Origin: Hyphochytrium catenoides
Lineage: Eukaryota > Protista > Hyphochytriomycota
Direction: 5' to 3'
NCBI GenBank assembly: GCA_900088475.1
Contig: FLMG01001135.1
Coordinates: 1 to 54,067 of the forward strand
Length of the DNA stretch: 54,067 nt
In this document: piece by piece, positions 2,807 through 29,793 of the stretch
Layout of the letters: every line of letters begins with the position of its first letter
Numbering within the stretch: position 1 is the first letter of the stretch
Translations under genes and position numbers: made by a program
Notes under the pieces: model-generated
The model's database searches: none
What the model was told of the DNA's origin: nothing
The model's input: only the letters and a program-made list of their open reading frames with translations

Positions 2807-3693
2807 CTACCATTGTAAGCCACCTAACATAAGGTAGCTCTTCACCTCCACGGAGTGCTGGATGAGGTTATGTCGTTTCTCCAGAGCCTCGTCGATGAAT
2901 CCGCAGGCCTCCTCTACTGTCTCGTAGTCCCACACAGTGAAGCCAGGGTTCCCTCTAATTAGTGCAGAGAGGCTTCGGCCGCAAGATGGCCTAAAGAGAC
3001 AAACAACAGGCTTTCCTAGCGCCTCTGCCAGAGCAATCTCATAACCAACGCCTGATGGGTCCAAGAAGGGGCGACACGAGGGTCAGTTTTAGAAGAATAG
3101 TAAGCTCTTTAAGCATTGGGAAGGTATAGATTAGCCTTTAGACTTTGACGAAACGACGAAAGAAGACTACAAAGCCTTCCTCCAGCAGTAACCCAAGAGT
3201 AAAGGAGTCTTACCTAAAGAAGGTGATGTTACTTCGGCGATGACAATATCAGCTTCTCTGAGCCAGCTGACGTTGCGGTGGTAGATCTTTTTGTCCGCTT
3301 CAGGTCCTGCAGACTCCAACACATACTCCGCATCCCCTATATCTTCAGTTAAGACGTCACACCTTCGTCTCATATGCGCAATGATCTCCCTATACACGCT
3401 GGCATCTTGCCTTCCACCGCGAATAGAGCCACAGAAGTAAATCTGGTCATAGAGAACATGAGAACGTCACCGCATACCTCTAAGATGTAAACCACACATA
3501 CCTTCAGATTCTCAATGTTACTACTCACTGAGGCTCTACGTGACTCGAGGGAGGCCGTGGGCTCTTGGCCTCTCGCCCTGGATACCTCTTCGCCAATTTG
3601 ACAGCTCACAGCCTCTACATCCCCAGGTCCTTGTGAGGGTAACTCCTGCGTAACAATACTGCTGTCATCGTGGCTTTCAGATAGCTGCGGCAT
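2807..3693 (-). CDS. DNPH1: 2'-deoxynucleoside 5'-phosphate N-hydrolase (DNPH1/Rcl; nucleoside 2-deoxyribosyltransferase fold) with N-terminal extension; 5' end uncertain
   Basis: Spliced: ...IENLK|IYFCGSIRGGRQDASVYREII...VLTEDIG...IYHRNVSWLREADIVIAEVTSPSL|GVGYEIALAEALGKPVVCLFRPSCGRSLSALIRG. Closely matches human DNPH1 (LYFCGSIRGG, VAEVTQPSLGVGYE, CLFRPQSGRVLSAMIRG). Confidence 0.92.
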
Positions 3694-4528: not shown

Positions 4529-5275
4529 ATGGATCTGCATGGGGTGGTAGAAATATCAGATGATGATGAACCGTTCTTTGAGCCACAAAGCCATGTGGAC
4601 GTAGACCTTTCGTCCACCCAAAAAAGCAGGCCTAGGCTTCTTCACACTCCGCCAAGAAGCTCCAAGAAGCGTAAAGTAAATGTTACGGAGGCCTCGAAGG
4701 TGGAAAATACACAGTTGCCCCAGAGGTTAGCTGCCAGTTTTCCTGGGGGCAAGAGTGAAGGCGTTCCTAGCGCAGAACAGAGCATCGTTACGCTACCTTC
4801 CGATGACATTCTCGTCTGCATGCAGTGTTATGCTTGTATTGAGCGCAGCCAGTGGTCTGAGCATAGCGATTATCACATCGCTCTAGACTTTCAGGGCAAA
4901 GCAACCCAACCGCAGATCTCAGGATCATCCCAAATACGCTCCTCGCCTAAGAAGCAGGGTCACCGAAATATGGCCGGCACAGTCTACGACGATAGAGGAG
5001 AAAGAGCTAAGGAAGACACCTTACAAGTTCACGCGCAACCCAATCACACCAGGAGAAACGCGCAAACTACCGAGTGCTTCAATAAGGATCAAAGATTGAA
5101 AAATGATACTGCTCTTCGGACGGGATATAGTGACCCAGAAGACCTATTATCAGTTTCGGAGGCTCTCAATCTTTTGCAGACTCCACAAAGGGCCGAGGAC
5201 TACCTCATCGCCTACCGGAGTAGATATGGACCCCTTCCATGGGATGGCATTGTCGATGAGTCTACCATTAAATAA
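4529..5275 (+). CDS. Intronless 248-aa protein with a UBZ3-type ubiquitin-binding zinc finger and SIM-like motifs
   Basis: ATG-initiated ORF. CMQC-x11-HSDYHIALDFQ (4817-4894) matches the Pol eta-type UBZ (CxxC...EHxDYHxAxxxQ). N-terminal VVEISDDDE is SIM-like; KKRK is a possible NLS. Confidence 0.75.
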   Translation: MDLHGVVEISDDDEPFFEPQSHVDVDLSSTQKSRPRLLHTPPRSSKKRKVNVTEASKVENTQLPQRLAASFPGGKSEGVPSAEQSIVTLPSDDILVCMQCYACIERSQWSEHSDYHIALDFQGKATQPQISGSSQIRSSPKKQGHRNMAGTVYDDRGERAKEDTLQVHAQPNHTRRNAQTTECFNKDQRLKNDTALRTGYSDPEDLLSVSEALNLLQTPQRAEDYLIAYRSRYGPLPWDGIVDESTIK

Positions 5276-5423
5276 CCGAATGACGACGTTAGGATCACCA
5301 TGCATGAGGTTTCTCGATGAGTATTCCGGAGAGACGCAGGAGAGATGAGGGCGATAACATGGAAAAGTTTGGCCACTTTGGCCTCGGTAAAGGTGCAGTC
5401 AATCATCTTCAATAGTAATTGGG

Positions 5424-6420
5424 TCAAGGTTGGCCTTCTCCACTAGCCCAACAATCGCAGGGTACAACCGTGCTGCATCCACCAGAATTCGAATAAGGCG
5501 CTGCTTCTCATACTTTTCCAGCGTTTCTCGAAGTTTTGCATCCTTCTCGGCCTGGCTGTCTTCGTGGTGACGGGCAGCTTCTTCTCCTTTCCCTTCGCTC
5601 TCTTGGTCTTCTTGTTCGTCTTGGTGGACTGTCTTTGGCTCCTCATCTGTGGGTATGCCGTACGCTGCAGACAGCCATCTATGTAGAAAAATTTGAAAAT
5701 CATGCGTGGCTCAGAAGCGAGAGGCGTGACGCAACACGTCTGAACAATCTACAGAGACAGAAGATCGAAATTGTAACCTTTGATGCTTCATTGGGTCACT
5801 TGCTGCTACTACGGCCGAGGCGACACCAAAGATGGATGTGTGCTGTACATCCATCCTTCCTAGCAGCACAGCCACCGTGTGCTTGCAATAACCTAATCGG
5901 CCAGGTTAAAGGTTTGGATAGAGCGCTAAAAGGAATATAAAATTTGCTGACCTTGACGCTTGTCAGGGCAGGTGCAGGAGCAAGAAATGTTGGTCTCTGA
6001 CACTGGATCTTCTTTGCGCCTAAGGTAGCGCACCGGTGTGTTTCGGGTCACTACTCCATTCTCCACCCTTCTATGTAGTCCTCCTAACGTACCATGTAAT
6101 AATAACGAGGTAAGGCTGGTCTTTAGAACCCTTTACAGAGGCTTCAAGTCTCCCTGGCTCCTCCTTCGTGACCTCCACTTGGCCTGGGAAGAGACAATCG
6201 TCACAAGTAGGCTCGTTCATTATAGGGCTCAATCCCCCTTGCTCACCTTCATTATAGAGCTCAATCCCCCTTGATAGAGAACCCGCAGAGGCATGTTCCC
6301 TGTGGATACCGAAGAAAGATTCAGTGGGCTGAAGAAGGCATTCACTAGGAGCCAAAGACTAATGCACCTGATGAGATCCTCCGTTACTCCGTCGATGATA
6401 CTTCGATGCTTACGCTTCAT
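5424..6420 (-). CDS. SWIM zinc-finger protein, bacterial COG4715-like architecture (6 exons, about 210 aa)
   Basis: Phase-compatible GT-AG splicing gives MKRKHRSIIDGVTEDLIR|EHASAGSLSRGIELYNE|GQVEVTKEEPGRLEASVKGSKDQPYLVIITW|RKEDPVSETNISCSCTCPDKRQ|GYCKHTVAVLL...|WLSAAYG...KLRETLEKYEKQRLIRILVDAARLYPAIVGLVGEGQP*. Contains the SWIM motif CxC-x6-CxH. Confidence 0.8.
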
Positions 6421-20912: not shown

Positions 20913-23429
20913 ATGGCCATGAAGAATGATGATCAGAATGTTCCACTAAGCCCCAAGTTGGCCCATGTCCGACCTCCTCCTAGCAACCTTCCTTCAGAGT
21001 ATGAGTTGCTAATTATAGCACCGTCCTTCCGAGACGGAGAACGATGCGGAAAGATGATCCTTTCTGCGTTAAAAACTGCAGATCACCCCGAGAGGCTACG
21101 CTTTGCCTTTATTGACCAGGTAGGAAGACAACTATAAGGAGTAGATGGAGACACCTTGGTAAGGACAGGGAAGAGACTCAAAGGAAGACATTATTTAGAA
21201 GGATGGTGTGATCCACCTTATGAACATGAGGAGTTACGTATGTGGTTGGCAAAGAAGCACATACTTGGAGATGGGACGGCGCCTGTAACTTCCCCATCAG
21301 CAATTTCTGGTGTAAATGCCCGTAGAAGGTTCCTTTTTACAATGTATCCTCTAGAGGCTGAGCATGTTACCTCTTCATCCTCTGTCTGCAGGTCCTTCCC
21401 GAGGATGCAACATGCGTTGAAGTCTACTGCAGACTTGCTAAAGCTGAAGGCTTCAGCGTCAGGGGAGAGGAGAGAGGAGACGAGCACTGTCCCTATGTGG
21501 AGCGGATAAAGTTTGAAAAGGTGGATGCACTGGAGTCGAAAGGTAAATGAGGGTTAATTGTGAACTTCCGCCCGAAGAACATCAATGAGAAGGGAAGAAG
21601 GAGAAGTCACAGAAGCTTAGCAGAGACACTTGATGCGATGTTTACAAAGGTAGAATCTCAATCGCTTCTTGCTGCAGGACCCATGGTTGCTCGGGCACGC
21701 GCGCAAAAGTTGGTCGGAAAGGAAGAGTTCTGCCTGTCGATCGACTGTCACTCGACTTTTACGGAGCACTGGGACTCCATCATTCTGAAGCAGTGGCTCA
21801 GTGTTGGGAACGAAATGGCAGTCCTCAGCGCCTATCCGCCACCCATAGGAGGCTCCTCTCCCACTATGTCCTACTACATGTGCGAGGTGATCTCCCTTAC
21901 TTAGAAAGTCCCACTGTCTCCAACCGCTTTGTCTTTCGCATTGCACCCTAGTGCGGCACTTCTTGCGGCCAGCACTTGACTATCTGCTCATCACTCTCGC
22001 ATTAGATAGTCCGCAACTCAATGCTTCTTGCCGTAGAGCTCTTCTAGGGAGATTGTGGTCTGCGGTCCTTAAGGCTTTCTTCTGAGAGTGACCTATACTT
22101 GAAATTTAGCCACTACGTGCTCAGTACAGTGCAACGCCATATACTTTTTTCGATTTCTGCCTTAACGCTTTGCCCCTCCCTTAGGTAGTCTCTTCCAAAA
22201 GTGGCGTAGGAGAGGGCTTCGTGCGAATGTCGAGTCCTCACCGAGTTAAGTCGACTCTTCCTCTCCTGCAGCCTTACTGGGGAGCTGGCTTCTCTTTCTC
22301 TAAATGTCATGCGGAACGACGCGTGCCCATAGATCCTCTTACTGACTGGGTGTTTGATGGGGAGGAGTTCAGTCGCGCATTGAGTTTGTGGACTAATGGC
22401 TATGATATGTATGGGCCGCAACATATCCCTATCGAACATGACTACAACCCCGTCCCGCACAATGTATACCAGAGATACGCAACGGTAAGGGTCGCCATCA
22501 TTCTTCAATCTTCTTCCTCTCTACTCGTTTGATTTTCCGTCATCGATGGCTCTCTTCCTTCGGTTTTATACTATTGCTTTGGTCAGTCCATTGTCTCTTG
22601 CGCTTGACGGTAGATGGGCACACTTCTCCGTTGTCATTTACTCTGCTATCACCTACTTTGACCGTTCCGAGGTCACTGGCTGCAATTGTAGTAGCTAGGG
22701 AGAGCTTCCTCAGAATGCCGCACTACTTGTAGAGTGTTTCCTTCATTGTTGAGAAGCTCGTGCTTAAAGCTCTTCCCTCCCTGACCCTAGTTGAAATTGG
22801 ATTTCGTCATACAGCTTTTTCTGAGCTCCTTGAATACCTAGTTGTGCTGGCCCTGCTCACCTCTAACCCTACTTTTGGCTTCGATATTCTGTCAGGTAAA
22901 CGCAGAGAAAAATGTAGCGGACGGTAAGAGGGCAATCAACCGTCTGAAGCTGCAGGCTGGTGTTCCCTTCGATGAGAGAGTAAACACGACGGACATCTCC
23001 CTCTATTCTCCAGGAACAGTGCGGACAGTTGCTCAGTATAAGGCATTTTCGGGTGTCAACGTTCTCCAACCGGATAATTCGGAGAGCAACTGCGGAAAAG
23101 TGCTACACTGGATGCCCTACGATGACGTCAGGCCCCTACACGCACTGCCTGGGATCAAAGATTGGCTTCGGCAGTATGAAGCAGCCAGATGTCAGGAACA
23201 GAACAGAGAAGAAGGGTTGCGGGAGAAGGATAGGGAAGCGGAGGTCCTACAATTAAGAGGGATGGCAACACGAGGGCCAACGTTAGAAGTGGCCTGGAAC
23301 AGTGGAGCCTGGCTTTTGCTAGGCGCTATGCTAGCCATTGGCTTTCTTCTCTGGCGAAAACGCCATATGGCACCACAGTCTGTGCGCAGGGCCCTTGGTC
23401 TTTCCAAGCCGCCTTCCAGCGTCCTCTAG
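20913..23429 (+). CDS. GT60-family GlcNAc-transferase (Skp1-hydroxyproline Gnt1/Gnt2-like, Pfam GlcNAc) with C-terminal TM helix; true start probably further upstream
   Basis: Motifs IAPSFRDGERCG...ADHPERLRFAFIDQ; GPMVARARAQKL...CLSIDCHSTFTEHWD; VLSAYPP; QPYWGAGFSFSKCHAE...WVFDGEEFSRALSLWTNGYD; TM segment AWLLLGAMLAIGFLLW followed by RKR. Confidence 0.88.
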
Positions 23430-23494: not shown

Positions 23495-24580
23495 ATTGCG
23501 CCTCTCGTTCCCCTCCTCAGTCCTGGGTCTTCTCTCTCACTGTGTTTCTTTCCTTTTATCTATGCATAAGACCGCTCTTTCGTCCTCAACTTCAAAAGCC
23601 TAGCACACACCCGCTTTATTGAAAGAGCAGAACCGCCAGATGACAGAAGCCTTGTTCAGAGGAAGTGTAGCTTCGTCGTGGCGCTAGCGACCTCAAGAAG
23701 TGTCTGTACAACCCACCCAGACCACTAAGCCTGAGGTCTTCTGACTCTCTTAGTGCTTCGCTTTCATCTCTTCATGCGTTGACATAACTCAGCATGCGCA
23801 CATCCTTGGCACTTCCAGAAGGGCAACTGAAGCGCCGCGTCTGGCCTACATGCAGACCATTGTTGCTCTATCCGCATGCTCTAGCGTCCCGGAGACAGCT
23901 CTCAGACTTCGCCGTGGGTCTCTATGTTTCTCCCCCATAATCTGCGGCACTCTCCTCCTGGCTTCTTATCAACTCTTACGATTCTCTCTTAGTACACGCC
24001 TTGCTCTCCCTCTCTCTGTCTGCGCCTGTTACAATATCTCTTGCCTCTGTCCCTCTATGTCTCTGTCTCTATCTGTCTTTGTCTTTAGCGCTCGGGCTCC
24101 TGACACATATCTCTCCGATCTCTGTCTATTATTTGTCATTCTTTATCCTATTTTGCCCCCTGCCTTTCTCTGCTCTGTCTGTCTCATTCTCCTCTTCCTC
24201 TGTCTCTGCCCCTCTCTGTCTCCCTATTTATTGTCCTTAGCGGATCTTTGCATCAATGAAGAGAAGCCCCACAGGACGGAACCTATTATTATCCTTTAAG
24301 CCCTCGTAAATATCCTCATCTCCTGGCCCTTCTATGTATTACCACGACTTTCCCTTAGCCCCTCCCCCACCAAACTCTGTCTATTCCTCTCAACAACACC
24401 ATGCTCTCTTGGTCTACCTCGCGGCCTAGGATTAGCAAACGTCTCGGCCAACCTAGCCCAACCCCATTCAGGGTATCATGGTTAGCCCCAGTATCATCTA
24501 AAAGAGTTGGGCAGATCGCCCAAGTCAACGAACTTACAGGTAACCTGGGTCTCTTGGGTGTTAGGTGGAATATGTTCTAG
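23495..24580 (-). CDS. Possible small multi-exon hypothetical gene
   Basis: Phase-compatible short exons can be threaded (RLAETFANPRPR|EGPGDEDIYEGLKDNNR|PDAALQLPFWKCQGCAHAE|HFLRSLAPRR). No recognisable domain and no clear start codon. Confidence 0.25.
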
Positions 24581-24935: not shown

Positions 24936-27900
24936 AGGTTCCTCCATTTCGTTGAAGCTTCACTCAGAAGATATAGTCGCAGGCGGAGGGAGCTTGATAG
25001 AAGTCTCCTTCGGACGTCTTACCAACTAAAGTTCAGCCTAATCTCTCCCAGTAAATGGTAAGCTCCAGCATAAGTAACTGCGGTGGCATCGCTTGTGTCC
25101 ACTAGACCCAACCCTCACTCTATTCGCAACTCTATTCGCACTTGTTAGGTCCCCACTGGCAAAAACACCTGAGGGTGTGACGGTGGGAGTGCACCACCAC
25201 CAGCTGAAGATATTATCCTAAGGAACGCGCTTCCAAGGCGCTGGCGGACAGAGAGGAGAGCAGGTGGGCTAGGCTTGCCCCCATCTTGGGACGATGCATC
25301 GACCCCCTTCGCAGGTATGTTATGCTGGTATCCCTTCCTCGAACCGTGACCGATTCATTCGGCCGTTTAACATGTCATGGGCGCAGGGGCTTGACCAGCA
25401 GGCTCTCATGCTGGAACACATCGTAGCGGATGAGCAACACAGAATGCGGCACAAGCTGGGGATGATTGAGTCTTGGATCCCAAACGAGGCTAGTCTTAAC
25501 TGCTTTCTTCTCCGCCTTAGTAGTTACCAATCCGGATCTGTATCAATTGTTAGTCCTGCACTATCTGTGTACCGACCGTCTTACCCCTCTTTTGCTGGCC
25601 TCCTCTTAGGCTTCTCCTGCCAAGTGCAATATCTTTATGACTCGTGATTGGGCGACAAACTCCAAGCTTCTGCTGCTTGTGAACTGTGGCAAAGGCATCC
25701 CTCCAGGCATCTGGAGTCGTAGTCTGGTGTTGGAGTCCCAGGCGCAGGGTCAGACTTCGGGGGGCAGCAGGCCAGGATCAATGTAAGCAGCATAAAAGAG
25801 GAAAGCGATTGCCACCTCTGGGCTGCTGACACTTCCTTCTCTGTAATTTTCGTTTCCCGGTCTGTCGTTCTTTGTCTTGCTCTGCCTTGTACTCTCCTTC
25901 TCTTCTAGGTATGCATATATTGGAGCAGCGATCCAAAACAGGATGGCGTGCGTCGTGCTTAATCCCAACGTCAACACCTCCATTGTAGGCGACCAGAAGG
26001 TAATGATAACATCCACTCCTCAGGTTGTTCGTTACTTCCTCTTGTCCGCACAACTGGCTATCCCTTACCTACTCTCATTAACCCCCTCTCTCTCATCTCT
26101 CTTCTCAATGCCCCCAGATCCCAATACCTTTTTCGGGCACCCCCGAGCAGCATGTGAACTTTGTTTGGGAAGCCTATTTGACACAAGCATCAGCAAAGGA
26201 AATCTTCATCGTAGCCTACGGGAGAGGTGGAGCACTGGCAAAATACTTGCTTGAATCCCAGCCTGGGCTCAGACAAAGACTCTGTGCCATTGCTTTCGTC
26301 GAGTCGAGCCATAGAACTTCAGCCACAGACCTACCAGTAAGGAGTAGCGACGTCGGCCTCTCTCTCTCTCTCCCTTTTTGGTGCCTCTCCTTCGCCTTTC
26401 AAAGCTCAACATGTTCCTGGCGTCAGCCTTAGTGCGCTTGCTATTCAGTGACCGCTAAGTCAGAGGGCCTAATATCATACGCTACGAATGCTCGTCATGT
26501 GCTCTCAGGATATTCGACGGCTTTTAAGCACACGTGCCATCAACTGGAAACGCTCTACGGAGATGGCGGGCGTACAGCTGCATGACACAGACGCGTTAGG
26601 ATGCCTCAGCCTATCAGCAGGAGAACCTCCTGGCAACACGACTTCCAACACTGCCTGGACCATCGGCGCAAGCATGGAGACAGTGTTTGCGTTTTTCAGG
26701 ACAGCTTCAGGTACAATCCTTATCTATCTTGTCTCTTGCGGATGTGACGCGGAGTGCCTCCTTCTGCTCAAGGCTTCGATTGCTGCTGGCCGTACCTAGT
26801 TTCTTCTCATTATTGACAACTCTGAGATCAATCTTTCTTTCTTCCTCTGTTTCTCTCGCTGGCCCCCTAGCTTCGACAGGTCAACCATCCTCGGAACCTA
26901 AGCAACCGAGTGGTAGTCCGTCCGCTAGTCGACAGGGCCATGAGTCTCCGTCTAAGGACGACAGCATGGACATGCACATGGATGATAGTGACATGACAGA
27001 CTCCTACCCAGAGATCAGGTCGGTAGTCAGACGGGCGTGTAATCATCTCACTGGCCAAAAGACGATTTATAGCGCTATCTTTATCTTGATCCTATCCTCT
27101 TAATGGTCTAAACGGGGATAGAATATTGAGCAGAGAGTAGAGGGTGCTATAGGCTTGCAGGGTATTGTCAGCTCCTCTCGCTTAAAGAACCGCTCATAGT
27201 AGCCTCTCTTCCACAATTGCCATACTGTAAGCTCTGCCTGTCTCATCTTACGCAGGGTCTATGACCTGCGTCTCTGTGGCCTCTTACGGTTTCGATGCCT
27301 CCTCTGCGTTCTCTTCTTCCAAATCATTGTAGGGCAAGCAAGATGGGAAAGGATGTTTTTACCAAGACCTTAACAGTGAATGACTTTGAGTTTCTCTCCG
27401 TGGTGGGCAAGGGCGCATATGGAAAGGTTTTCCTTGTGAGAAAGAAGACAGGAAAGCACCAAGGCAGGGTCTTTGCGATGAAAGTCCTTAGAAAGGAATA
27501 CGTCTTCAAGAAAAAGCAGGTCCCCCTTAGTGCTAGCTACCTTCTCCTTGTTCCACATCCCACTGTTGTTCCCTTGTACAGCTATCACTGAGTTGCCCTT
27601 GCATGGTGCAACCTTCGCCTGACATCGCTTTCATTGCAGGTGGAGCACACCAAGTCCGAGCAGCGGATCCTGAAGTACGTGGACCATCCTTTCGTGGTGC
27701 GCCTTCGCTATGCCTTTCAGAATCCAGCCAAACTCTATCTGGTTATGGACTATTATAGCGGGTATGGTGTCCTTTGCTTTAGCTTTCTCTTACTTTGTCG
27801 GCCTTGGTTAGTCACTATTGATCACTACTTTTTTGAATGCTTCTGTTGCGTCTTGCAATGCTATCTGACCGAGCTACTAATCCCTTAACTACTTTCCCCT

Positions 27901-29793
27901 TCATGGGAAATGTATCTGTTTCATCTCCTGCTTACTTGCTGCCATCCACAGTGGCTCTCTCTTTTATCACCTGCGAAAAGAGAAGCGTTTTCCGGAAGAG
28001 AGAGCCCGGTTTTACGCTGCTGAGCTGGTCCTGGCTATCGCGCATCTACACAGCCTCCATATCATGTACCGAGACCTGAAGCTGGAAAATATTCTAATGG
28101 ACGAGTCGGGACACCTCGCCATCACGGATTTTGGGCTTTCCAAGGAGAATGATCAGGGCACCACGTTTGTCGGGACTCCAGAATGTAAGCAATAGCATCC
28201 CTTCCCACCACTTTCCTTCTATCGCAATCAAGCTGGACTTCCCTTTTAGAGATTGTCATCTATGTCTTGCCTTTGCTTTTCTTTTTCTTTTGGAAGATGG
28301 CGACTCAATGTCGTCTCTGCATGTTCCGAAACAATTAGGGCAGAGCTTTGGCTATGACATCCTCTTTGTCAAGTTGTGTTTGGCCTCTGGCGTTGCTTTT
28401 TTCTCCTTTCCTATCTAACGAAATGGTATTTGGTAGCCGTCGCCTGGCATCTATATATTACCTCTCTGGATGATCGGACGTATCTATTTTGCCATCCAGG
28501 CGCTGACAACTGACCTCGGTAGCCGCTTCCTAACACTCCTCTACTCCTCTTTCTTTATGTATCGTTATTGGACTCTTTCTCTCATAGACCTTGCCCCAGA
28601 GCTCCTTTCGAGCCAGTTGACGCCCACACCTAGCACCTATGGCAAGAGCGTGGACTGGTGGAGTTATGGCGTTCTGGTTTACGAAATGATTGCCGGACGG
28701 ACGCCTTTCTTTAATGCGAACAGGAAGACAATGTTCCAGTCCATTTTGCAGGGAGATGTCCAGTTCCAACCTGAGCTATTCTCACCAGTTGCCCAAGACT
28801 TTGTTAGAGGTAAGAATGTTGATATGATAATCTTGCTTCCAAGCTCTGCGATCTCCGTTTTTCTTACGGAGATGGCTAGATAGAGCTAGTTTAGGAGTCA
28901 GTGTTGAAAAACTTTTAGTGGTCTCTATCTAGTTAAGGGCTGTTGCTCTTCTCCAGCACCTTTTCCTCTTCGATTGGACTCTTTCTTATCCCGGCTTCCC
29001 TTTCCGACTGTTGCTGACTCCGCACTGGCTAGCCCTTTTGGTTAAGGATCCGAACCGCCGGTTAGGGTGTGGTCAGGACGGACCGCGTGAGATTATGGCC
29101 CACCCATGGTTCATTGGAATCGTCTGGCCGAATCTCATGAGAAAGGAAGTCACACCACCTTACTTACCGCCAGTCACTAATAGTGCAGATACAAGGTGAC
29201 TTGATCTCAGCTGATGCTCCTTGCCTTACCTGGACCACGCCAATCGGGCGCGTTATGTTCGTCAAACGTACACTATTGGCGTTCGGAATCCTAACTCCGT
29301 TTGTTATATTGACTGGCTTTGGCGCCTCTATCTCACTCTCTTACTCACTGGCCTCTACTGCCGGGCACCGTAAGCTCAAGTTCCTCTAACCTCTACACCT
29401 TCAGTTTCGTCCCCACAGTCTTTAAAAAACAGGAGGTGGCCGACTCGCCTGTTCAGAGCAGCCTACAAGGCAGAAACACTGCCTGGCACTTTGAAGACTT
29501 CTCCTACATGGGGTCAGAGGCCACAAGAGCAGGAGGCTCCTTCTTCAGCAGGCCCAGCGAGGCCTTTGCCAAGTCTATGGATATGAGCACCTCTATGGGT
29601 AATGATCGCCTGTGTTCATTCATACACTCCCTGTCCGCTCCACTTTGATCGTCGCCCTTCACCTGGTGGGATGGTGTTCACGAGATATTGCACGCTTTAC
29701 CTCTGCATTAAGTACAGAAGATTCAATATGTCCCTGTATTTCCTTTTTGTTGCTGCGCTGACGTCCGCTTTCTCCGATGATGTAGATCGATGA
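24936..29793 (+). CDS. Arb2 (FAM172A/ARB2A-like) domain fused to an AGC Ser/Thr kinase (AKT/S6K/SGK-like); 5' end not resolved
   Basis: Arb2 part: CNIFMTRDW...LLLLVNCGKGIPPGIWSRSL...GSM|YAYI...VVLNPN...TPEQHVNFVW...IVAYGRGG...AIAFVESSH...AINW. Kinase part: GKGAYGKV, FAMKVL, YRDLKLEN, DFG, GTPEYLAPE, DWWSYG, RRLG, PPYLP, turn motif DSP, hydrophobic motif FEDFSY. Linker exons are phase-compatible; last exon DR* ends at 29793. Confidence 0.88.

Follow-up and report, generated by a model that had tools for sequence, protein, structure and literature searches.

A probable fusion of an Arb2 domain to an AKT/SGK-like AGC kinase in Hyphochytrium catenoides: an intron-rich gene of a known and poorly studied family

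Results

Overview of the locus

The contig FLMG01001135.1 of Hyphochytrium catenoides carries, on the + strand, a multi-exon gene in which an N-terminal Arb2 domain precedes an AKT/SGK-like AGC kinase. Comparison with homologous sequences makes it very probable that a single gene with about 12 exons occupies the locus, which would encode an Arb2-linker-AGC kinase protein of about 690 residues and be the ortholog of the plain Arb2-kinases of oomycetes. The fusion itself is not new. Because the architecture was catalogued in oomycetes in 2010 and is present in seven copies in the H. catenoides genome, the gene is regarded as an ordinary, intron-rich new member of a known, poorly studied family. 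All positions refer to the window, which is the whole stretch of DNA analysed, 54,067 nucleotides in length. Homology searches were performed exon by exon or with ortholog sequences, in-silico joining of exons was used for the stop count and for the 13-residue windows across junctions, and the genome searched comprises 61 Mb in 4759 contigs.

Gene model

As shown in Table 1, five or six Arb2 exons (approximately 25372–26710) are followed by a linker exon and six AGC-kinase exons (27333–29601).

Table 1. Exons and selected introns of the Arb2-kinase gene in the window.
Feature	Position	Strand	Evidence and remarks
First coding exon, with the N-terminal helix in the Arb2 region	25372–25488	+	Aligned to oomycete ortholog N-termini; exon end set by homology, implying a GC donor
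First intron, probably GC-AG (GCTAGT...TTAG, 121 nt)	25489–25609	+	Sole junction matching ortholog spacing, from the W-I-P to the A-K-C motif
Arb2 exon	25610–25782	+	Pfam Arb2 15.9 bits (25610–25780); tblastn with Saprolegnia P0001, 45% identity; junction checked
Arb2 exon	25909–25999	+	Ortholog alignment; junctions in phase
Arb2 exon with nucleophile-elbow-like A-Y-G-R-G-G turn	26118–26336	+	PF22749 on this exon alone, 36.7 bits (cut-off 26.8); 59% identity to Saprolegnia P0001
Last Arb2 exon	26509–26710	+	tblastn with P0001 residues 194–270, 61% identity; ortholog alignment
Linker exon, 49 residues, Ser/Pro/Asp/Met-rich	26871–27018	+	Open frame; phase-1 entry, phase-2 exit
Intron from Arb2/linker to kinase (GTCGGT...TGTAG, 314 nt)	27019–27332	+	GT..AG, phase 2; predicted; alternative donor 27037
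Kinase exon 1, glycine loop and catalytic lysine	27333–27519	+	Pfam Pkinase 19 bits; aligns to an internal part of continuous ortholog ORFs
Kinase exon 2, alpha-C helix	27640–27761	+	84% identity to P. infestans ortholog P0136; junction checked
Kinase exon 3, catalytic loop, DFG and activation-loop threonine	27952–28184	+	Pkinase 79.3 bits (27953–28183); 82% identity to P0001
Kinase exon 4, APE and C-lobe	28588–28809	+	Pkinase 42.9 bits (28590–28808); 70% identity to P0001
Kinase exon 5, C-lobe end and start of AGC tail	29033–29195	+	tblastn with P0001; junction checked
Last large exon, AGC tail, D-S-P turn motif and F-E-D-F-S-Y hydrophobic motif	29405–29601	+	Aligns with ortholog tails

When the exons between 25610 and 29601 were joined in silico, no stop codon was found and the junctions were phase-compatible. 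An earlier note, made from the DNA letters of the window, had placed an Arb2 domain and an AKT/S6K-like kinase here on the + strand, joined in frame through a Ser/Pro-rich linker without a stop. The Pfam Arb2 and Pkinase matches on the exons bear out the placement, the open exon set agrees with the in-frame join, and the orthologs and paralogs described below support the fusion at the level of sequence comparison. The two junctions that the note had quoted (TAS g|ct and EI ag|g ASKM) are exact: the intron at 26711–26870 is in phase 1, where G|CT gives Ala, and that at 27019–27332 is in phase 2, where AG|G gives Arg and is followed by A-S-K-M.

Both ends of the span of 24936–29793 originally given need qualification. 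As judged by alignment, coding most likely begins with the ATG at 25372, or else with an in-frame one at 25294, and the end at 29793 depends on a putative 8-nt micro-exon at 29786–29793, the other option being read-through to the stop at 29646–29648. The first intron is probably of the GC-AG type. A GT donor near 25540 was considered for this intron and set aside; it keeps the frame but adds 17 residues and fails the ortholog spacing.

The intron region between the Arb2 and kinase parts contains six frame-keeping GT..AG pairs in all, among which the pyrimidine context is best for the 27332 acceptor. The donor of the predicted intron, GTCGGT, is weak, and the homology-verified donors of the same gene (GTCCCC, GTGACT and GTACAA) are equally weak.

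Arb2 domain

A six-frame search of the genome with PF22749 gave 34.7 bits at the same place as the exon 26118–26336. The fold was assessed with residues 1–280 of the P. infestans ortholog (P0136:1-280) in place of the H. catenoides protein; the structure predicted for this Arb2 half has a pLDDT of 87 and forms an alpha/beta-sandwich. The top Foldseek matches of this model were the Arb2 domains of Hda1 (5j8j) and Clr3 (5ikk), with E-values of 5e-8 and 3e-7, followed by alpha/beta hydrolases and esterases. The sequence identity between the ortholog Arb2 and the Hda1/Clr3 Arb2 domains is only 12–14%, and a sequence search of the PDB with the ortholog Arb2 half returned no meaningful match, so that the fold search alone succeeded. 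The position of the hydrolase nucleophile is occupied by glycine, i.e., the domain is without the nucleophile; hydrolases, and likewise FAM172A, have a serine at this position. The present protein shares the Pfam PF22749 domain with S. pombe Arb2, FAM172A and the C-terminus of Hda1/Clr3, and the fold predicted for its ortholog is most like that of Hda1/Clr3. However, Arb2 is joined here to a kinase, whereas in those proteins it is free-standing or joined to a deacetylase.

Kinase domain and linker

The Pkinase HMM matched four exons, and the complete catalytic core of a eukaryotic protein kinase is present. The glycine loop, the AMK lysine, the alpha-C Glu, YRDLKLEN, DFG and TFVGTPEY-LAPE were read directly in the exons, as were the DSP turn motif and the FEDFSY hydrophobic motif of the AGC tail in the exon 29405–29601, which align with the ortholog tails. 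The full catalytic set and both tail motifs had been described previously, and this description holds. Pkinase_C (PF00433) gave no match on the 54-residue piece 29035–29196, where the scan stopped short of the last exon; the paralog L002 of the same genome (31.8 bits) and P0009 do contain it. For the kinase half of the Saprolegnia ortholog P0001, the nearest sequences are AKT1/2 (E = 1e-88), followed by SGK1, RSK and S6K.

The activation-loop motif T-F-x-G-T-x-E-Y, the turn motif and F-x-x-F-S-Y are shared with the animal and fungal kinases AKT, SGK, S6K and Ypk1. In contrast to these, the H. catenoides kinase has neither the PH domain of AKT, nor the PX domain of SGK3, nor the N- or C-terminal regulatory segment of the S6K type, and carries Arb2 at its N-terminus instead. 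No PH domain was found by Pfam in the exons of the window or in the orthologs. The lack of PH and PX domains, as already proposed, is accepted on the grounds that the ortholog N-termini coincide with that of the present protein.

In the alignment, no similarity could be detected between the linker exon and the linkers of the orthologs. The ortholog linkers are acidic, non-conserved and of similar length, and AlphaFold2 predicts them to be disordered. The full-length AlphaFold2 model of the ortholog has a pTM of 0.51, with a pLDDT below 50 in the linker and no confident packing between the domains. Since the model gives no confident interdomain arrangement, intramolecular regulation through autoinhibitory docking is unsupported.

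Evidence for a single polypeptide

The sequence comparison provides strong evidence that the two halves belong to one polypeptide. The top database match of the Arb2 exon is a 684-residue Saprolegnia 'AGC protein kinase' (P0001), in which Arb2 covers residues 32–212 and Pkinase 330–590. In tblastn, its residues 37–270 and 318–684 align in order over both halves of the gene with 45–82% identity, and the exon-by-exon alignment to eight orthologs extends from the N-terminus to the C-terminus. In P. infestans, the ortholog is encoded by one genomic ORF free of introns (L011 1501–3609). The fusion was also found as one ORF on two Logan contigs, and MMETSP transcripts from ochrophytes contain both domains.

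The H. catenoides genome provides similar evidence. The paralog L002:1333-3366 is one ORF of 678 residues with Arb2, Pkinase and Pkinase_C, and at the locus L006 an open frame of 546 residues spans Arb2 and the start of the kinase. Seven Arb2 loci were found in the genome, and each is followed immediately, on its own strand, by exons of an AGC kinase. The locus in the window is the best match in its own genome to the P. infestans ortholog P0136, with 79–84% identity on the catalytic exons.

These results bear directly on the reading of the locus as two adjacent genes, in which an Arb2-only protein would run past the proposed donor to the TAA at 27101–27103 and the kinase would start from the ATG at 27343 (or 27295). 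The linker frame does reach this stop and the ATGs are in the kinase frame; moreover, some public pipelines annotate orthologs as two models, one with Arb2 only and one with the kinase (P0003, P0190, P0225 and P0226). However, the gap between the two genes would be only about 240 nt, compared with about 1.9 kb from the end of the nearest upstream open frame to the start of the gene, and the residues immediately after the acceptor align to an internal part of continuous ortholog ORFs. With the uninterrupted ORFs of the P. infestans ortholog and the same-genome paralog and the kinase linkage of all seven Arb2 loci, the two-gene reading is highly improbable. The public models that separate an 'Arb2 domain-containing protein' from a kinase are probably wrong.

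A second possibility is that the fusion gene also yields an isoform consisting of the kinase alone, transcribed from an internal promoter or translated from the ATG at 27343, which would give the cell regulated and unregulated forms of the kinase. This ATG lies in frame within kinase exon 1, 10 nt past the acceptor, and a kinase-only product is therefore possible; the 314-nt intron could hold a promoter. However, the intronless orthologs have no conserved Met at the equivalent alignment position, and such an isoform is considered unlikely. The preferred reading is accordingly that of a single gene for a single Arb2-kinase polypeptide.

Discussion

Relation to known proteins

The closest relatives of the gene are the plain Arb2-AGC kinases of oomycetes, which are about 690 residues long and include XP_002898260.1 of P. 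infestans ('ribosomal protein S6 kinase, putative'), XP_008613027.1 of Saprolegnia diclina ('AGC protein kinase') and KAF1778742.1 of P. cactorum ('Arb2 domain'). They agree with the H. catenoides gene in domain order, N-terminus, linker length, kinase motifs and C-terminal tail, with 45–84% identity depending on the exon. The differences lie in the linker, whose sequence is unrelated, and in the introns, which number about 11 in the H. catenoides gene and 0 in the P. infestans gene.

The combination of Arb2 with an AGC kinase in P. infestans was reported by Judelson and Ah-Fong (2010, BMC Genomics 11:700; PMC3019232), who listed PITG_06776 as ARB2-C2-FYVE-AGC/AKT (883 aa) and PITG_01365 as ARB2-FYVE-AGC/AKT (894 aa). 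In both, as in the H. catenoides gene, Arb2 is N-terminal to an AKT-like AGC kinase; however, C2 and/or FYVE separate Arb2 from the kinase in these proteins, and both are absent from the H. catenoides gene. The plain Arb2-kinase subfamily is not marked as Arb2-bearing in the table of that report, which presents Arb2 as a kinase accessory domain unseen outside Phytophthora and notes no ortholog in diatoms, apicomplexans or ciliates (PMC3019232). The fused protein is nevertheless present in public annotations across oomycetes and in Ochromonas and Nannochloropsis, in contrast to this Phytophthora-limited range. The supposition that similar fusions exist in stramenopile annotations was correct: such proteins occur widely, and the combination had been in print since 2010 (PMC3019232). 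Paralogous architectures add C2, FYVE or PH modules to the Arb2-kinase.

PsZFPK1 of P. sojae (PMC10381902), a FYVE-AGC kinase that was found with PITG_01365 as the query, comes from a family of AGC kinases with a relationship to the Arb2-FYVE-kinase paralogs. In that study, in which PsZFPK1 was knocked out in P. sojae, the region N-terminal of FYVE (residues 2–321) and the T-loop threonine were needed for function, the protein was cytoplasmic, and removing the N-terminal region did not alter its localisation; Arb2 is not mentioned (PMC10381902). PsZFPK1 has a FYVE domain, which the H. catenoides gene lacks, and is at best a paralog and not the ortholog.

Possible function

Activation of the kinase would follow the pattern of other AGC kinases, with a PDK1-type kinase acting on the activation loop and a TOR-complex-type kinase on the AGC tail motifs. 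A TOR FRB domain was found in the genome. Arb2, with its alpha/beta-hydrolase-like fold without the nucleophile, may act as a tethered, non-catalytic module for partner binding or regulation, separated from the kinase by a linker of about 60 residues that is flexible, acidic and rich in Ser and Pro, and would take the place of the AKT PH domain.

The earlier note had proposed that one polypeptide could couple growth signalling to RNA silencing or chromatin. According to this proposal, Arb2 would bring the kinase to Argonaute or chromatin and thereby link TOR/PDK1 signalling to RNA silencing or histone modification. The ortholog Arb2 fold resembles the Arb2 domains of Hda1 and Clr3, one Piwi/Argonaute gene is present in the genome, and the Arb2 protein FAM172A is described as binding AGO2 (PMC10205598; bioRxiv 10.1101/2022.03.04.482948). 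However, the proposal derives only from the roles of Arb2 in other proteins, and nothing was found in its support at this locus: the Arb2-AGC kinase family has no known tie to Argonaute or histones, and the identity to the Hda1/Clr3 domains is as low as given above. The paralogs pair the Arb2-kinase with the lipid-binding modules C2, FYVE and PH, and the FYVE-bearing PsZFPK1 is cytoplasmic independently of its N-terminal region (PMC10381902). Such a coupling is thus very unlikely.

A different view of Arb2 can be offered tentatively. In stramenopiles, Arb2 might in essence serve AKT/SGK-like kinases alone, as a regulatory module without catalysis, with the plain Arb2-kinase as an ancestral core extending from ochrophytes to oomycetes. 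It might replace PH as the part that senses inputs or binds partners, through G-alpha binding or control of nucleo-cytoplasmic distribution, for instance. Both roles have been reported for N-terminal regions, as yet uncharacterised, of AGC kinases in P. sojae; in PsYPK1 (870 aa; XP_009525581.1), such a region binds G-alpha (PMC7010300). The kinase linkage of all seven Arb2 loci in the genome, the reach of the family to ochrophytes and the absence of the hydrolase nucleophile may be of help in studying Arb2 tethered to an AKT-like kinase.

A possible link of PsYPK1 to the Arb2 family would run through its P. infestans ortholog, XP_002900048.1; the candidate that had been looked up (P0223) is another protein, XP_002898881.1.

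Gene structure and kinase domain

A multi-exon gene lies on the + strand of this eukaryotic region, whose GC content is about 49%. Pieces in frame were translated by coordinate and then scanned against Pfam; exons were joined solely for stop counts and for short windows across the junctions, and the searches and structure predictions used single exons or orthologs. The 11 exons in the table are separated by GT-AG introns throughout and contain zero stop codons.

Exons of the Arb2-kinase gene in window coordinates, with bit scores from the Pfam scan (Arb2, PF22749, cut-off 26.8)
Feature	Position	Strand	Match or composition
Exon	25610-25782	+	Arb2, 15.9 bits on 25610-25780
Exon	25909-25999	+	
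Exon	26118-26336	+	Arb2, 36.7 bits
Exon	26509-26710	+	
Linker exon	26871-27018	+	49 residues, much Ser, Pro, Asp and Met
Exon	27333-27519	+	Pkinase, 19 bits on 27334-27519
Exon	27640-27761	+	
Exon	27952-28184	+	Pkinase, 79.3 bits on 27953-28183
Exon	28588-28809	+	Pkinase, 42.9 bits on 28590-28808
Exon	29033-29195	+	
Exon	29405-29601	+	

The earlier note began the gene at 24936; alignment with the orthologs places the coding start most likely at the ATG at 25372, or at an in-frame ATG at 25294. The first intron, 25489-25609, is probably of the GC-AG type (GCTAGT...TTAG), since no other junction keeps the W-I-P and A-K-C motifs as far apart as they are in the orthologs. At the 3' end, the micro-exon ending at 29793 that had been proposed is one of two possible ends, the other being a read-through to the stop at 29646-29648. 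A long low-complexity pyrimidine-rich tract (CT/CTGT-type) without coding signal lies at 23960-24240, in the 1.9-kb gap between this gene and an open frame ending at 23429.

The window translation shows the catalytic motifs of the kinase as well as a turn motif (D-S-P) and a hydrophobic motif (F-E-D-F-S-Y); the AGC kinase is intact and has the three regulatory phospho-motifs. As the earlier note stated, it has neither a PH nor a PX domain. The closest matches of the ortholog's kinase half are AKT1/2 (E 1e-88), followed by SGK1, RSK/MSK, PKC and S6K.

Probable continuity of the Arb2 and kinase parts

The junctions previously proposed between the two parts proved exact: the intron at 26711-26870 is in phase 1 (G/CT) and that at 27019-27332 is in phase 2 (AG/G, then A-S-K-M). 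The linker frame continues to a TAA at 27101. In the upstream direction, the kinase frame has no stop as far as 27265, and it contains ATGs at 27295 and 27343. Only six frame-keeping GT..AG pairs exist between linker and kinase; the best acceptor among them is 27332, with the donor at 27019 (GTCGGT) or 27037 (GTGTAA). The donor is weak, and three homology-fixed donors of the same gene (GTCCCC, GTGACT and GTACAA) are equally far from the consensus.

In an exhaustive HMMER search, the best match of the 73-residue Arb2 exon was a 684-aa 'AGC protein kinase' of Saprolegnia diclina (XP_008613027.1; 59% identity), with Arb2 at 32-212 and Pkinase at 330-590. This protein is colinear with the whole window gene at 45-82% identity, its residues 37-270 corresponding to 25619-26721 and 318-684 to 27355-29597. 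Many further matches also combine Arb2 with a kinase, some with an additional FYVE domain, C2 and FYVE domains, or two to three PH domains. When the pieces were compared exon by exon with eight orthologs, they aligned from the N-terminal helix through the C-terminal tail, the linker being the sole unalignable part, and the residues right after the 27332 acceptor fell within an internal part of continuous ortholog ORFs. The Phytophthora infestans ortholog (XP_002898260.1, 702 aa; hereafter P0136) is one ORF without introns in genomic DNA (1501-3609 of L011), and in each of the Logan contigs L010 and L012 the fusion likewise forms a single ORF.

A single-frame copy also occurs in the same genome. 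A six-frame search of the 61.0-Mb assembly (4759 contigs) gave eight Arb2 matches at seven loci, the window and six others, and at each of these tblastn on the flanking sequence placed AGC-kinase exons immediately downstream in the same orientation; neither a free-standing Arb2 protein nor Arb2 joined to a deacetylase was detected in this search. Contig C4479 holds one uninterrupted 678-aa frame (L002:1333-3366) with Arb2 at 57-260, Pkinase at 347-605 and Pkinase_C at 626-667, and on C3189 an open frame of 546 aa covers Arb2 and the kinase start. By tblastn, C666 has Arb2 and then a kinase. On C521, a stretch between the two matches P0042, an Arb2-C2-FYVE-kinase, in its FYVE segment. C1868 is colinear with a protein of this Arb2-C2-FYVE-kinase layout, and C4384 has two Arb2 regions before its kinase. 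The Arb2-like regions on C4384 lie in tandem (1666-2376 and 2920-3568 of locus L019), and the exons of the one AGC kinase follow at 4842-6331.

On this comparative and own-genome evidence (colinear orthologs, single-ORF orthologs and a single-ORF paralog), Arb2, linker and kinase are very probably parts of one polypeptide, as the earlier note had read them. Of the loci in this genome, the one in the window matches P0136 best, with 79-84% identity on the catalytic exons and summed bits above those of C4479, and is therefore the ortholog of the plain Arb2-kinase subfamily.

Taxonomic spread and published relatives

The suspicion that similar fusions exist in other stramenopile annotations was borne out. 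A full-length search with the S. diclina protein found Arb2 with Pkinase in the oomycetes Aphanomyces, Pythium, Lagenidium, Globisporangium, Phytophthora, Peronospora, Bremia, Hyaloperonospora and Albugo, in Nannochloropsis oceanica, and in MMETSP transcripts, of which two carry the label Ochromonas. In several Peronospora and Phytophthora annotations the orthologs appear as Arb2-only models of 400-520 aa (P0003, P0155, P0180, P0190, P0225 and P0226), whereas the genomic ORF of P. infestans runs without a break; these models have probably been split or truncated.

Proteins of this architecture have been published and annotated before. Judelson and Ah-Fong (2010, PMC3019232) counted Arb2 as one of the accessory domains newly seen with kinases; in their supplement, PITG_06776 is ARB2-C2-FYVE (883 aa) and PITG_01365 combines FYVE with ARB2 (894 aa). 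PITG_01365 served as the query that identified PsZFPK1 of P. sojae, a cytoplasmic protein whose knockout impairs growth, oospore production and virulence and leads to an excess of sporangia; its function requires the T-loop threonine and residues 2-321, N-terminal of FYVE (PMC10381902). That paper makes no mention of Arb2. In another P. sojae AGC kinase, PsYPK1 (XP_009525581.1, 870 aa), the N-terminal region 'of unknown function' is essential; it binds G-alpha and excludes the kinase from the nucleus (PMC7010300). In size and layout, PsYPK1 resembles the Arb2-kinase subfamily of about 890 aa.

Arb2 fold and proposed function

By sequence, the Arb2 half of the ortholog had no match in the PDB. 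The AlphaFold2 model of P0136:1-280 (pLDDT 87, pTM 0.86) matched best the Arb2 domains of Hda1 (5j8j) and Clr3 (5ikk), and then many alpha/beta hydrolases. In an alignment of 20 family members, the window and its orthologs have A-Y-G-R-G-G in the strand-turn-helix that corresponds to the nucleophile elbow of hydrolases. The putative nucleophile position, placed relative to FAM172A through the motif of that protein, is Gly in these; paralogs have Ala, Ser or Asp there, which makes a conserved serine-hydrolase activity unlikely. Despite the absent nucleophile, Arb2-domain residues invariant among oomycete, ochrophyte and own-genome members (S120, P123, H126, Y148, G151 and E176 of P0136) may form a conserved binding site. 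The full-length P0136 model has two well-folded domains joined by a linker (259-331) with pLDDT below 50, and its pTM is 0.51; thus, it does not support a fixed intramolecular docking of Arb2 and kinase.

The window gene thus probably encodes a non-catalytic Arb2 fold tethered through a disordered linker to an intact AGC kinase. Arb2, standing in the place of a PH domain, would act as a partner-binding or regulatory module. Activation of the kinase would fall to one kinase of the PDK1 type and another of the TOR-complex type; the genome encodes a TOR FRB domain. The earlier note proposed that the polypeptide could couple growth signalling to RNA silencing or chromatin. The one Piwi gene in the genome leaves room for the Argonaute idea; the coupling is nevertheless unsupported, and signalling in the cytoplasm or at membranes appears more likely than at chromatin, since paralogs join the same Arb2-kinase core to C2, FYVE and PH lipid-binding modules.
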